Sequence record: MK773491.1 | DNA: 64,000 nt | Direction: 5' to 3' (one strand) | The notes under the pieces: model-generated | What the model was told of the DNA's origin: nothing | The model's input: only the letters and a program-made list of their open reading frames with translations | Databases searched by the model: none | Part shown: positions 4,599 to 42,400 of the stretch, piece by piece | How positions within the stretch are numbered: the first letter of the stretch is position 1 | Layout: every line of letters begins with the position of its first letter | Made by a program: the position numbers and the translations under genes

Positions 4599-4602
4599 TA
4601 TC

Positions 4603-4729
4603 ACAAAGGGGAAGCAATTGCTTCCCTGTTTATTTGTACAGTACTATAATCTATAGATACAATACCGCACCCCGTGGGCTAATGTGTTTTCATGGGTATT
4701 ATTATGCCAGTACTACAAACATTTGTCAA
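4603..4729 (-). ncRNA. Candidate ~95-nt sRNA: TTGACA-17-CATAAT promoter, GCCCACGGGGTGC motif, intrinsic terminator
   Basis: Promoter 4729-4701, motif 4667-4679, bidirectional hairpin 4607-4627; near-duplicate at 13171-13297. Confidence 0.6.
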
Positions 4730-5127
4730 TCATTATTTTCAATTAATTTAAACGCACTGTAACACTGTATAAGGCGTTTTGTTATTAAGGTAAGCAAACG
4801 TATTGAGTACTATCTAAAAGGCCGTTGTGGGCTTGCTGGTGGCGTTGTGTTGTAGTATTGAAATATAAGGAAAATATAAAAAAGGCTGTCAATGATTAAA
4901 AAAGTACTTGACGGATTGATTTAGTACTGTCATAATGTATCACATAGAGCGGCGGGATGGATAAACATTCCTAAGTAGACAGCCAGTAAGTCATACGAAA
5001 GACTGGTGCCGAACTGAAAGAAAGATTGAAAAGAGTTTTAAAAAGTACTTGACAAGCTGGTGGGAAATTGAGATAATGACCCCGTAGACAGCAAACAACC
5101 TAATTAAACTTTAAGAGGAAATATACA

Positions 5128-8180: not shown

Positions 8181-8363
8181 ATGAATACTGTACAAGTACT
8201 AGATGAGATTGAAAAAATTGTTGACAGTACTAACAAACGTGATATACTGTTATCAAGAAATGAGGCTAACCAGTACGAAAAGAATTGCGTACAATCGGTA
8301 AAAGGGGGCATCTTTGAATCGTTACACACAGCCATACTTCAAGGGAATCACAACTGTTCCTGA
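8181..8363 (+). CDS. Hypothetical protein
   Basis: GAGGG RBS. Confidence 0.65.
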   Translation: MNTVQVLDEIEKIVDSTNKRDILLSRNEANQYEKNCVQSVKGGIFESLHTAILQGNHNCS

Positions 8364-8567
8364 GCGTAAAAAGAAACTACGCACAGCACCGAAACGAAAG
8401 CGTAAAGTACTTAAACTTAAACCAACGTATGGTTGGGGATTGTCGTGGGATGAAATCAATCACGGCCTATCATGGAATCAATTATATGTTATTGGCTCAA
8501 GTGTTGGTCGCTTTCATTTTAGTACTATATCACGACACGAAACACGTGTAAACCCATATAAAAGTAC

Positions 8568-21838: not shown

Positions 21839-22068
21839 GGAATTTTTACCTAAGTCAGATTTTATCTAACTCATTTTTAAAATAAGTCAAGAAAAAAATG
21901 AGTAAGGTATTGGTTGACTTTTCTATAAAAAATATTGATTGGACTATGAAAAATTTTTACCTTAGTGAAGGCCAGTCATGCCTTAGCCACCCGTAAAACT
22001 GATATGTGTATTTGACATATCGGTTTTTTTCTGCTATACTGTTTTTTATTAATTGTATTGGGGGAAGC

Positions 22069-22554
22069 ATGTCTTTATCTAAAGATATTGAATTCGCGTA
22101 TCAGGTTCTGCGTATTCGTAATGAAATGATTAGCGATGAAATCTGCAATAAACTTCCGGTGGGATGGACGTTCGGGGCAAACTTTCAAATTAAATCTTAT
22201 TTCTATAGATTTAAAAATTATCGTGGTCATAGACTTTTCGGGGATGTTAATTCTCTTCATTATAACATTGATTCACAAACTTCTTTCATAAGCAATATGT
22301 CATTTTTGTATATAGCCGATAGCAATGTTGTTTCGTTTGCATATAAAGAGAAAGATATTCCCATCGTGGAATTTACTGAAGAATTATACTTTCAATATAG
22401 TTTGTTGTACTCAGATAAAGAACTTCGCTGGTTAGTTGTTGCAAGCATACTTTATAATAATCCAATTAAAAATTGTAAGCGTTTTAAGATTCGTTTAGAT
22501 TATATTCAAATATTAACAAAACTTTTGAGGTATTCAGACTATGGCATCATATGA
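22069..22554 (+). CDS. FQ-motif paralog (ELYFQYSLLY)
   Basis: Start moved to ATG 22069 after GGGGGAAG; motif in C-terminal third. Confidence 0.85.
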   Translation: MSLSKDIEFAYQVLRIRNEMISDEICNKLPVGWTFGANFQIKSYFYRFKNYRGHRLFGDVNSLHYNIDSQTSFISNMSFLYIADSNVVSFAYKEKDIPIVEFTEELYFQYSLLYSDKELRWLVVASILYNNPIKNCKRFKIRLDYIQILTKLLRYSDYGII

Positions 22555-40317: not shown

Positions 40318-41181
40318 ATGAAACTACAACTAATATATGATTTCTATGACCGGGATGATGGTGAGGATGTATGTTGTGATGGTGAATATTATGGATATGC
40401 AACAGATGTTCACACAAATTCGAAACTTCCTCATGAGAACAAAACGTTTAATGAAGAAGTTCATAGAAAAATGAGCAAGTACTTTAAACATTCTGCTAGG
40501 ACTGATAATAGGACTTTGGTGGAAATCCCAGATGATATAATGTTCCAGTTCATGATAGATGGGGTATATGATTATGATTATATTGCATATAACATGATTG
40601 ACGGTCGTATTTGTATCTCCAATACCAAACAAGGTGCATGTCGTTATGGTAATGATGAATACGGATATGGTTGTTCAAATAATGCAGATGGGGATGAAGA
40701 AAAATTCTTTAAATTCAATCTTGATAATTCATCTAAGTTGGACAAAGAACGTGATAGTAGAAATAGCTATATGATTGTTCCAGATGGGGAGCACTATAAG
40801 AATATTCATGAAGTACTAATGCCTTACATTGTGTATCGTTTTGTTCAACATTTCAAAATGGGCGTTGATTGTATTTCACAGACTCAAGTTCTTAATAGTG
40901 TACGAAGTGAATACGAATATGAAACTGAAGAAATTTGTTATGAAGTTCATAGCAATGGTGAATACATATTCTCAGGTAGTCAATTGTTTGATGATGACGA
41001 GACAAACTGCCGTAGGACTTGGGATATGCGTTCGGACACATTCGTATTGTGTTTACAATTCTGGGTTGAGGATCATCCAATCTTTTTAGCAGCAAAGGAC
41101 TTTATTTCGGATAGAGACGTAGAAATTTATAAATTATTTTATAATAAAATTATGTCGAAAATAACTGAGACAAAGTGCTGA
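40318..41181 (+). CDS. Acidic hypothetical protein
   Basis: AGGAG RBS, 287 aa. Confidence 0.85.
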   Translation: MKLQLIYDFYDRDDGEDVCCDGEYYGYATDVHTNSKLPHENKTFNEEVHRKMSKYFKHSARTDNRTLVEIPDDIMFQFMIDGVYDYDYIAYNMIDGRICISNTKQGACRYGNDEYGYGCSNNADGDEEKFFKFNLDNSSKLDKERDSRNSYMIVPDGEHYKNIHEVLMPYIVYRFVQHFKMGVDCISQTQVLNSVRSEYEYETEEICYEVHSNGEYIFSGSQLFDDDETNCRRTWDMRSDTFVLCLQFWVEDHPIFLAAKDFISDRDVEIYKLFYNKIMSKITETKC

Positions 41182-41197
41182 AAATGTGATATAATAT

Positions 41198-41230
41198 AAG
41201 GGTAAAGGCGTGTGTCCTTTACCCTTTTTC
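41198..41230 (+). terminator. Intrinsic terminator
   Basis: AAGGGTAAAGG-CGTGTGT-CCTTTACCCTT-TTTC. Confidence 0.8.
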
Positions 41231-41234
41231 AATT

Positions 41235-41710
41235 CTGAATGACCCGAAAGGGATTAAGAAAAGCCTGATTCACTCGAAAATGTAGAGGACAGATGAGTAG
41301 TTCATTCAGTACGATAGCAGATGAGACCCGTTAGGAGATGGCATAGTTAGTACCACCCACGGCAATGCGGCTATTAAAACCAAGACAGTACTACATAAGC
41401 TCTTGGCGTGTACACGGCACGATAGACATATAGGATTCGCACCTACCAAATGTATAAGGGAATTACCTTATTTTGGGGCGATGTTTTAGGGTATACCCTT
41501 ATTGCGTCCAAAATTTGAGTAATAAGTACAGTAACAGTTCATGTTGTTATTGTATTAAGCGTACTAAGACTACGACCGTTGCATAGAACCGCGATAGGGA
41601 GAAACAGGGCAACCCGCTTCCGCTCAACTATATGAAATTCGTGACATGAAAGGATGATGACTACCAGCGTCAAATATATTTTTTTCTCCCTCCCCTGTGG
41701 GGGGATGAAA
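41235..41710 (+). ncRNA. Candidate large structured ncRNA (~470 nt); strand inferred
   Basis: No ORF of 60 aa or more, higher GC, many nested helices with GAAA/GCAA loops. Confidence 0.55.
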
Positions 41711-41755
41711 GTGAATCAAACAAACCTCGTCAATAATTAAAGTACAATACTAAAT

Positions 41756-41836
41756 GAGTAAGAATATTCAAGAACGAACGCTAGTGAGTAATTGAATATT
41801 CTTACTCTGAATCATTGAACGTTAGTGAAATGATTC
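41756..41836. repeat. Twin perfect hairpins (16-bp and 8-bp stems) with shared loop GAACGYTAGTGA
   Basis: 41756-41807 and 41809-41836. Confidence 0.85.
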
Positions 41837-41869
41837 GTTGTTTAGTGAATAGAAAAAGAGAAAAACAGA

Positions 41870-42400
41870 ATGAATGAAGTGACATATAAACAGAAAGATG
41901 GTACATTGATCAAAAATTCAAATGAATTACCGCAGTACTTTACTGGATATAAAATCTCAAAAGACTATAATAAACTTAGTTCAATTACTGAATTTGATAA
42001 AGGAACTGAGATTGGTAGAATCAGTTTCAGACCAACACAACAGCCTGTCATTTTTTCTGTGAAATATGGAGGTTATAGTGAAGAACGCTATAACAATGGA
42101 AATGTAAATTCTGTATATTATACTGATCATAACGCAAGAATTTATGGTGAGTACAGGAAATATACAATTAACGGTGAACTAAAAACTGTCAAGTACTTCA
42201 GTGATAGTTCTGATGTAACAGAAGATATTAAATCTTTTATTGGTTTTACTGGTGATAATGATTCATTTAAAACATACAAATTCGCAGAAGATGAGGTTTT
42301 TAACTTGTACATGATGTACGGTAGTAAATTTAAATTTCACGATGAATACAGAATCGATAGTTCAAAATTTGATGATATCATGAGATTCTGTTTAAAATAG
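41870..42400 (+). CDS. Hypothetical protein with a MORN-like segment and degenerate FQ-like motif (DEVFNLYM)
   Basis: YGEYRKYTINGELKTVKYF resembles MORN-variant repeats. Confidence 0.75.
   Translation: MNEVTYKQKDGTLIKNSNELPQYFTGYKISKDYNKLSSITEFDKGTEIGRISFRPTQQPVIFSVKYGGYSEERYNNGNVNSVYYTDHNARIYGEYRKYTINGELKTVKYFSDSSDVTEDIKSFIGFTGDNDSFKTYKFAEDEVFNLYMMYGSKFKFHDEYRIDSSKFDDIMRFCLK

Follow-up and report, generated by a model that had tools for sequence, protein, structure and literature searches.

What occupies a 688-nt stretch of a gene-dense phage genome in which neither strand appears to encode a protein? The question is raised by positions 41182-41869 of a 64,000-nucleotide window (the whole stretch of DNA analysed here, nucleotides 62001-126000 of sequence record MK773491.1), which comes from Salmonella jumbo phage 7t3/Munch. 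Phages of this type are jumbo myoviruses of about 350 kb that belong to the 121Q/PBECO4/GAP32/CBB group. The gap contains no open reading frame (ORF) of at least 50 amino acids (aa) on either strand and is flanked by two complete plus-strand ORFs at 40318-41181 and 41870-42400. An earlier note, made from the letters of this one sequence, had proposed that 41235-41710 is a large structured non-coding RNA (ncRNA), either in the size class of the GOLLD and ROOL RNAs or a novel one. Here, we compare the locus with its homologues and conclude that it apparently belongs to a large ncRNA class that has been neither catalogued nor described previously. Its multi-copy nature, its pseudoknots and its occurrence in bacterial islands lay beyond the reach of a single-sequence note.

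The setting of the locus agrees with what had been noted. The gap, which had been called the longest ORF-free one in the gene-dense part, is the third-longest in the window without an ORF of at least 50 aa, and the two longer ones (1-1576, partly an edge artefact, and 1883-2640) both lie within the first 2.7 kb. The GC content is indeed higher: it amounts to 0.419 for 41230-41745, while the window as a whole has 0.353 and the flanking genes have 0.29-0.34. The proposed extent holds for a core of about 500 nt (41230-41735), while the conserved unit is wider and runs from the promoter at 41166 to about 41840. The region 41150-41870 is 100% identical among the Salmonella phages 7t3, SE_PL, Munch and PHA46, and 99.7% identical in the Klebsiella phage fENko-Kae01.

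Compensatory changes support a pseudoknotted fold

Homologues were collected from IMG/VR by two pattern scans followed by nhmmer. Together with the 7t3 copies, these gave 54 unique near-full-length sequences with a median pairwise identity of 63%, and all of the IMG/VR copies lie on contigs of about 350 kb or on fragments of these; ten other pattern matches in IMG/VR were rejected as chance occurrences in unrelated high-GC DNA. The 54 sequences were aligned in two parts, the 5' half as A1 and the 3' half as A2. RNAalifold on an initial alignment, weighted mutual information with average-product correction, and inspection of A1 and A2 converge on one architecture.

Across the 34 proposed pairs of A1, 96.5% of the alignment cells are paired, as against 77.9% after shuffling (0 of 500 shuffles reach the observed value) and 30-44% when the partners are slid by 1-3 columns. 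Double-change cells number 304 where 83 are expected, and the covariation score is 0.483, compared with 0.149 for shuffled and at most 0.073 for slid partners. The 46 pairs of A2, pseudoknots included, behave likewise, with 97.1% of cells paired (79.8% after shuffling, again with 0 of 500 reaching the observed value, here for every measure, and 40-47% after sliding), 407 double-change cells where 107 are expected, and a covariation score of 0.511 (0.214 shuffled, at most 0.112 slid). For the 80 pairs of both halves taken together, there are 711 double-compensatory cells versus about 190 expected, both-sided changes occur in 54 pairs, none of the 500 shuffles reaches the covariation score and the slid controls score 4-7-fold lower. 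Thus, the element displays the compensatory changes across homologues by which a structured ncRNA gene is recognized; the earlier note had held that homologues lacking such changes would speak against its proposal, and they turn out to be abundant.

From these comparisons, the RNA is predicted to fold into about 15 helices with at least four covariation-supported pseudoknots, a fifth being tentative (Table 1). PK-a was also scored sequence by sequence: its longest Watson-Crick run averages 6.3 nt versus 4.3 nt in shuffled loops, runs of at least 7 nt are found in 48 of 93 copies versus 1.8% of shuffles, and at least eight distinct compensatory versions of it exist. PK-b switches from G-C to A-U in 10 sequences and PK-e from C-G to U-A in 22. 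Pairing is 94-100% in P4, its extension and P5, the latter two of which also show double changes; P11, P12 and P13 of the three-way junction are each 100% paired with many double changes. The tentative PK-c, between the P6 loop (41393-96) and 41451-54, gives a mutual-information signal over columns that are poorly aligned in MAFFT and is not confirmed. P14 is a weakly supported helix, the pairing register of which varies among copies. The helices are joined by invariant junction strings, namely GAUGAG, ACCCG, CGGCAAU, AUAAA, GAUAGA, UAAGGGAG, GACCGU, ACCCGC, CGUCA and GGGGGGA. A candidate closing helix between GAUGAG and CUCGUC was rejected as it has no compensatory support.

The 3' module appears to be tied to the core through its contact with the P12 loop. 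Its strings (P15, GGAUGAAA... and ACAAAYCUCGUCA) occur in the 7t3 genome only at the five copies of the element described below, its invariant GGGGGG adjoins the pyrimidine/U tract, and its last bases (GUAUAAAG, AAUAAAU) resemble the late-promoter motif ATAAATA of this phage clade (PMC5259590). The hairpins further downstream, up to about 41840, precede the ribosome-binding site of the next gene and are a candidate part of the RNA.

All strings listed in the earlier note lie where it had placed them, and six of its helices are conserved: TGAATGA/TCATTCA is the pseudoknot PK-a, by which the P3 loop pairs with the 5' leader, CCC-GAAA-GGG is P1, CCAAGA/TCTTGG is P6, TAGG/CCTA is P7 and TACAGTAACAG/TGTTATTGTA is P9, while TTTTGG/CCAAAA is a genuine helix within the variable P8 domain. 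Three others fared less well. ATAAGG/CCTTAT is restricted to the window's own copy and is not conserved; GGG-CAA-CCC is not a hairpin, its GCAAC pairing instead with GUUGC at 41578-41582; and the long-range helix AGGGAGAAA/TTTCTCCCT, with 22-87% pairing per position and no compensatory support, is rejected, with GGGAG pairing instead locally with CUUCC in P12 (100%).

Table 1. Features of the element in the window (copy A), with positions, strand and support
Feature	Positions	Strand	Support or remark
Promoter: -35-like TGAGACA, 17-nt spacer, extended -10 TGTGATATAAT	41166-41172; 41185-41195	+	consensus scan
Terminator-like hairpin with U-run, between -10 box and RNA body	41198-41226	+	annotated terminator in Munch
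PK-a: leader strand UGAAUGA with P3 loop	41236-41242 with 41302-41308	+	mutual-information pairs 41238:41306 and 41239:41305
P1: hairpin CCC-GAAA-GGG	41243-41252	+	sequence and length vary among copies
P2: hairpin (3+2+3 bp), conserved loop GAAAAUGUA	41265-41292	+	both-sided changes in 7/8 pairs
P3: stem 3' of invariant GAUGAG, loop 41300-41309 in PK-a	41297-41312	+	100% paired (UA 27, AU 15, CG 10)
P5	41314-18 with 41370-74	+	encloses J-ARAWGARA, P4, P4 extension and CAAUGCG
P4	41328-30 with 41360-62; extension 41334-41358	+	
PK-b: AUG with CAU inside conserved GAUAGACAUAU	41365-67 with 41427-29	+	100% paired
P6	41380-85 with 41401-06	+	covariation (A1)
Extra hairpin	41408-41417	+	copy-specific
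P7: hairpin UAGG/CCUA	41431-41445	+	97% paired
Conserved UAAGGGAR, then variable P8 domain	41455-41522; closed by 41463-65 with 41520-22	+	
P9: long hairpin, loop 41538-41543 in PK-d	41527-41554	+	double changes in 9/10 pairs
P10: hairpin, loop CUAAGAC	41560-41574	+	covariation (A2)
PK-e: GUUGC with GCAAC in P12 loop	41578-82 with 41609-13	+	100% paired
P11 of three-way junction	41590-94 with 41639-43	+	
P12 of three-way junction, 15-nt conserved loop AAACAGRRCAACCCG	41597-601 with 41617-21	+	
P13 of three-way junction	41624-26 with 41633-35	+	
PK-d: 3' strand CAUGAA with P9 loop	41645-41650 with 41538-43	+	99.6% paired, double changes in 6/6 pairs
P14: small hairpin UGAC...GUCA, loop CUAYCA	41658-41672	+	90% paired, zero double changes
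3' module: U/pyrimidine run, P15, GGAUGAAA..., conserved ACAAACCUCGUCAA	41676-41735	+	
P15: CCCC with GGGG	41692-95 with 41700-03	+	99% paired, C-G replaced by U.G
2-bp contact: pyrimidines 5' of P15 with G41607 and R41608 of P12 loop	41690-91 with 41607-08	+	96% paired (AU 27, GC 18)
Downstream conserved hairpins: inverted repeat; second hairpin	41756-41807; ~41810-41837	+	pairs 41813:41823 and 41815:41821

A conserved peripheral module, ..GAUCCGUCY..AAUUUG, often accompanied by UACAAUAUA, lies in P8 (41463-41522) of some copies and in an insert of P13 in others; judged by eye, it has the look of a tertiary-contact unit for which the fold offers more than one site.

Non-coding nature and strand

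Stop codons of all three types occur in all six frames of all five 7t3 copies, at 7-25 per frame, which excludes a gene read with an altered genetic code. In the alignments of both halves, the lengths of insertions and deletions are not divisible by three. The 3' module contains a small ORF led by AUG, which was considered as well but discarded, since the copies do not have it in one common frame. A suppressor-type 'tRNA-TERM' is annotated in the 7t3 record at 338202-338283 of the phage genome, among about a dozen phage tRNAs; with all three stop types present in the copies, recoding by a suppressor tRNA would rescue no ORF. The strand of the RNA is revealed by wobble pairs: across the proposed pairs, 261 cells are G.U and 29 are A.C, an asymmetry that identifies the folded strand as the plus strand.

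Paralogues in jumbo phages

The 7t3 genome has five paralogues of the element, all on the plus strand, at 30.7, 103.2, 162.8, 243.7 and 325.5 kb, of which the one at 103.2 kb is the locus in the window and is referred to here as copy A. Each copy is 500-650 nt long and consists of long conserved blocks, the hairpins between which vary in sequence and length. In blastn searches, the region could be found in 62 phage records, with 68-78% identity over the core and at 3-5 places per genome, in phages of Escherichia, Salmonella, Erwinia, Yersinia, Xanthomonas, Serratia, Cronobacter, Pectobacterium and Klebsiella. Another 45 distinct full-length copies were recovered among 55 matches in metagenomes and bacterial genomes, bringing the total to about 100.

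The paralogues of 7t3 are separated from each other by distances of 0.5-0.6. Upon distance clustering, from which all relationships among copies were obtained, copies B, C and E of 7t3 group together and not with their positional orthologues in Yersinia, Serratia and Pectobacterium phages, a pattern that suggests gene conversion (concerted evolution) among the paralogues.

The arrangement of the copies is regular. In 12 full-length genomes or contigs, the copies of each genome are all on one strand, and the gaps between them are mostly 55-86 kb, many of them 79-86 kb, with positions conserved across genera; gaps of about 142 kb probably hide a copy missed by the patterns. For five random points on a circle, a minimum gap of at least 53.9 kb, as in 7t3, has p = 0.003. 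These genomes are syntenic, so the spacing represents one preserved ancestral arrangement and not 12 independent tests.

Copies in bacterial islands

A stricter pattern scan of bacterial assemblies and metagenomes identified 83 metagenome loci and eight full-length copies in bacterial assemblies, with scores of 298-329 bits. The carriers are Serratia fonticola (a complete chromosome), Serratia sp., Silvania, Enterobacter chinensis, Buttiauxella, two Enterobacteriaceae assemblies and a small contig of a 'Clostridium' metagenome-assembled genome. In E. coli, the element is present in 2 of 5426 genomes, unannotated, in an island adjoining ffs, and a search of plasmids found no copy.

In bacteria, the element is present as a single copy near one end of small islands that are integrated in Enterobacterales chromosomes. 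Genes in these islands are usually arranged as a chromosomal gene, a tyrosine integrase or large serine recombinase, the co-directional RNA, a divergent CI-like repressor, a Cro-like gene and a conserved 286-aa protein, which belongs to no Pfam family and for which a search of a protein atlas yielded nothing informative. In one case, an island of about 12 kb, nSTAND3, AbiGi and DUF4238 genes are present as well. The RNA-carrying islands may represent satellites or defence islands with a link to jumbo phages. When compared with the 7t3 genome, the island proteins have no counterpart there, bar one weak partial match to a DUF4326 protein, while the island RNAs are at a distance of only 0.25 from one paralogue on a soil jumbo-phage contig, closer than the 7t3 paralogues are among themselves. 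The lack of a shared protein, along with this proximity, argues that the RNA gene moved alone between phages and islands.

Promoter, terminators and signs of expression

The motif TGnTA(T/C)A(A/C)T precedes 100 of 111 family copies, and the family promoter consensus is TG(A/G)(A/G)AC(A/G), 14-15 nt and then TGTGGTATAAT. In phages CBB and GAP32, a promoter class with a -35 TGAAACG and a classic -10 box is found mostly upstream of DNA-synthesis genes (PMC5259590), and going by this published consensus, the family promoter probably belongs to the same class.

Copy B lies between two minus-strand genes, for endonuclease VII and a baseplate hub subunit, and has its own promoter, a bidirectional terminator about 680 nt downstream and, about 450 nt into the copy, an internal hairpin with a U7 run. 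Its position between opposite-strand genes, with a promoter and terminator of its own, indicates a stand-alone gene and not a leader. The hairpin and U-run at 41198-41226 are confined to the copy A lineage, in the positional orthologues of which they are kept; speculatively, this hairpin may stop read-through from the upstream gene while letting pass transcripts that start inside its 5' arm.

The element is probably transcribed, judging from the conserved promoter, the terminator of copy B, the G.U asymmetry and contigs assembled from metatranscriptomes. One wastewater contig of 503 nt nearly coincides with the element (41264-41748), at a low depth that is the same as that of the flank contigs. 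For the island version, 36-40% of the sampled words are present in two transcriptomic metatranscriptome runs (bioreactor and mouse gut) and about 48% in several metagenomic RNA sequencing (RNA-Seq) runs from sludge, both of which are suggestive only.

Relation to known RNAs

At gathering thresholds, a search of the whole window against Rfam 15, with GOLLD, ROOL, OLE, HEARO, raiA, RNase P, tmRNA, 6S and group I and II introns among its families, gave no match. The region 41100-41900 gave only chance-level matches at E-values up to 10, and the element in 14 other loci gave none at E-values up to 1. ARAGORN found no tRNA or tmRNA in the window, in agreement with the earlier note, as is the lack of group I or II intron matches. 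Of the two possibilities that the note had left, kinship to GOLLD or ROOL receives no support from either Rfam model, and compensatory changes together with the lack of a matching family favour a novel RNA. We found no description of this RNA family in the literature.

The element resembles ROOL and GOLLD in being several hundred nucleotides long, ORF-free, intricately structured, conserved and borne by phages or prophages. However, those RNAs, as far as the work cited in PMC7567579 (Harris and Breaker 2018) is represented there, are known mainly from Firmicutes, rumen and lake sequences, usually in single copy and often beside tRNA genes, whereas the present family has 4-5 dispersed paralogues per genome in Enterobacterales jumbo phages, away from tRNAs. 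A comparable setting is that of the Pseudomonas jumbo phage PA5oct, a distant relative in the same broad group, in which RNA-Seq defined four ORF-free plus-strand long non-coding RNAs (lncRNAs) of 236-619 nt, two of them making up 1-5% of the phage reads each (PMC7318152). Unlike the family described here, the PA5oct lncRNAs have no described structure, and the two abundant ones, ncRNA001 and ncRNA002 (8263-8498 and 21951-22401), which were the ones compared, show no similarity to it in nhmmer searches with filters off. Even so, large ncRNAs may be common to this jumbo-phage group as a whole. Large non-coding RNAs are likewise present in a lytic phage and in integrative satellites that interact with it in the case of the Vibrio phage ICP1, the ncRNA of which (about 800 nt) and the IIR transcript of its satellite PLE dominate their transcriptomes (PMC7567579). 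Those two RNAs are unrelated to each other and seemingly to the present family, in which, by contrast, one RNA is common to phage and island.

The likeness to group I introns, which are known from T4-like phages, is that of a pseudoknotted, catalytic-RNA-like molecule of a few hundred nucleotides. An intron was considered and rejected: the element lies between complete ORFs and downstream of a terminator, and at copy B between opposite-strand genes, with no splice-site context and no homing endonuclease. A group I core of P3-P7 was rejected too, as there is no Intron_gpI match and the covariation-derived order of helices and pseudoknots differs from the P3-P9 order of these introns. Transcripts that prime replication at origins, such as ColE1 RNA II and those of T4 oriF and oriG, share with the element a dedicated promoter and a non-coding transcript of several hundred nucleotides, but are not conserved pseudoknotted folds. 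ColE1 RNA II depends on its correct folding and makes use of a G-rich segment; oriF and oriG reportedly use middle promoters (Kreuzer and Brister 2010), with several origins per T4 genome.

Large structured RNAs are rare in bacteria and phages, and every class known so far, be it RNase P, group I and II introns, OLE, GOLLD or ROOL, has uncovered novel RNA biology. The family described here offers strong covariation support and an unusually knotted architecture in a tractable setting, that of cultivable Salmonella, E. coli, Erwinia, Serratia, Yersinia and Cronobacter phages, and hence a concrete molecule with which to ask what large ncRNAs do in giant phages. To our knowledge, neither 4-5 ancient, regularly spaced paralogues per genome nor sharing between lytic jumbo phages and small defence-gene islands has a precedent among large ncRNAs.

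Possible functions

Based on the evidence above, we hypothesize, with a probability of roughly 0.6, that the element is a self-contained gene for a large ncRNA of an uncatalogued family that acts in trans as a folded molecule. Host RNA polymerase would start at the TGRRACR box, 14-17 nt spacer and extended -10 box and read rightward, and the transcript would fold into a compact body of about 15 helices that is locked by PK-a, PK-b, PK-d and PK-e, with the P12-loop contact to the 3' module adding to the lock and PK-c perhaps doing so. The RNA would then act as a ribonucleoprotein scaffold or as a ribozyme-like molecule, present at a high dose from five genes at around the time when the DNA-synthesis genes are expressed. 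As the gene was transferred with no accompanying protein gene, its partner would probably come from the host or from the opposing element, or be the RNA itself. What favours a trans-acting folded RNA is the ribozyme-grade architecture with its conserved junctions, the dedicated promoter, the stand-alone copy B and the protein-free transfer.

Several observations weigh against this proposal. The folding energy calculated for this sequence alone lies within chance expectation (z = -1.45 for the plus strand and -1.10 for the minus strand), so that the case rests on the comparison with homologues. The terminator-like hairpin of the copy A lineage stands between the -10 box and the RNA body, and some copies have an internal hairpin and U-run 5' of the 3' module, which together leave the transcript ends uncertain. 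In RNA-Seq data, the phage element is seen only in wastewater metagenomes, in reads that are probably DNA in part and that match diverged relatives. A purely trans-acting RNA does not account for the spacing of about 80 kb and the shared orientation of the copies.

The spacing leads to the main rival, in which the copies would be five replication origins: the promoter-driven, folded transcript would form a persistent RNA-DNA hybrid near the G-run/U-run 3' module and prime leading-strand synthesis, much as ColE1 RNA II and the R-loops of T4 oriF and oriG do, and the element in islands would let a helper jumbo phage replicate them. The co-orientation and regular spacing of the copies in the 12 genomes and contigs, with the low p-value for 7t3, fit this proposal, as do a promoter class reported upstream of DNA-synthesis genes (T4 oriF and oriG have middle promoters), the invariant G-run beside the pyrimidine/U tract, and the lack of a recognisable replication gene in the island stretches read. 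However, no known primer RNA has such a conserved tertiary structure, neither GC skew, which is uninformative here, nor AT skew shows a feature at the five 7t3 copies, synteny reduces the spacing to one arrangement inherited from an ancestor, and there could be other causes for an even spread of a trans-acting RNA gene; we regard the origin model as unlikely. Similarly unlikely, in our estimate, is a combined scheme in which a new class of large pseudoknotted RNA, ribozyme-like or at the core of a ribonucleoprotein, would also act in cis on DNA, for instance at an R-loop origin or a chromosome-organising site, and would have been captured by small Enterobacterales islands to exploit or block phages; there, five evenly spaced, co-oriented copies would be kept since each also works in cis. 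The island context raises another prospect, namely that jumbo phages and defence-carrying islands are in conflict and the RNA would serve as a weapon or decoy: the island copy would titrate or mimic a phage factor (an RNA immunity comparable to the P4 CI RNA) or the phage copies would neutralise an island or host defence. The place of the element between integrase and CI-like repressor in islands with nSTAND3, AbiGi and DUF4238 genes, its comparatively recent horizontal exchange with a jumbo-phage paralogue and its travelling without a protein partner are compatible with such a conflict. These arguments are purely contextual, though: defence genes are common cargo of any island, and the presence, in all phages of the clade, of five syntenic paralogues of ancient origin points to a core function rather than an accessory counter-defence, which makes a role in conflict quite improbable.

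Size class, phage association and an ornate conserved fold also recall the RNA-only cages of ROOL and GOLLD known from cryo-electron microscopy, and the several paralogues with a common core and differing peripheral hairpins could in principle form homo- or hetero-oligomers. We give such a multimer little credence, given the lack of homology to either RNA, the failure to see by eye a conserved palindromic assembly loop and the engagement of most conserved loops in intramolecular pseudoknots. A cis-acting 5' leader, a riboswitch or attenuator for the gene at 41870, might be suspected from the absence of a canonical terminator between copy A and that gene and from the internal hairpin and U-run of some copies, a possible attenuator. 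The contexts of copy B, which is closed by its own terminator and is followed by no gene in the same direction, and of the islands, in which the element converges on the repressor gene, disfavour it, and with downstream genes that differ among paralogues and a terminator-like insert that is absent from many copies, a leader is highly improbable. Finally, the multi-copy, pseudoknotted nature of the element, the introns of T4-like phages and the suppressor-type tRNA annotated in 7t3 could evoke a degenerate intron, some other selfish mobile element or a recoded protein gene. These are effectively excluded: the copies are intergenic between intact ORFs, have no group I or II match even at E-values up to 10 and are syntenic and ancient rather than polymorphic insertions, and a recoded gene is at odds with the three stop types in every frame and the frame-breaking insertions and deletions.

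Annotation of the locus and other gaps in the window

Two other stretches of the window without an ORF of at least 50 aa, 1883-2640 (758 nt) and 4599-5127 (529 nt), are unrelated to the RNA family and have no Rfam match. At the locus itself, the Munch record is unannotated except for one terminator, while the 7t3 record places three minus-strand 'hypothetical proteins', 7t3_0243 to 7t3_0245, at 41306-41449, 41539-41673 and 41802-41906. These, like the small ORFs over copies in other records, are almost certainly spurious gene calls, and recognition of the RNA thus corrects the annotation of several GenBank records in which such ORFs lie over the element.

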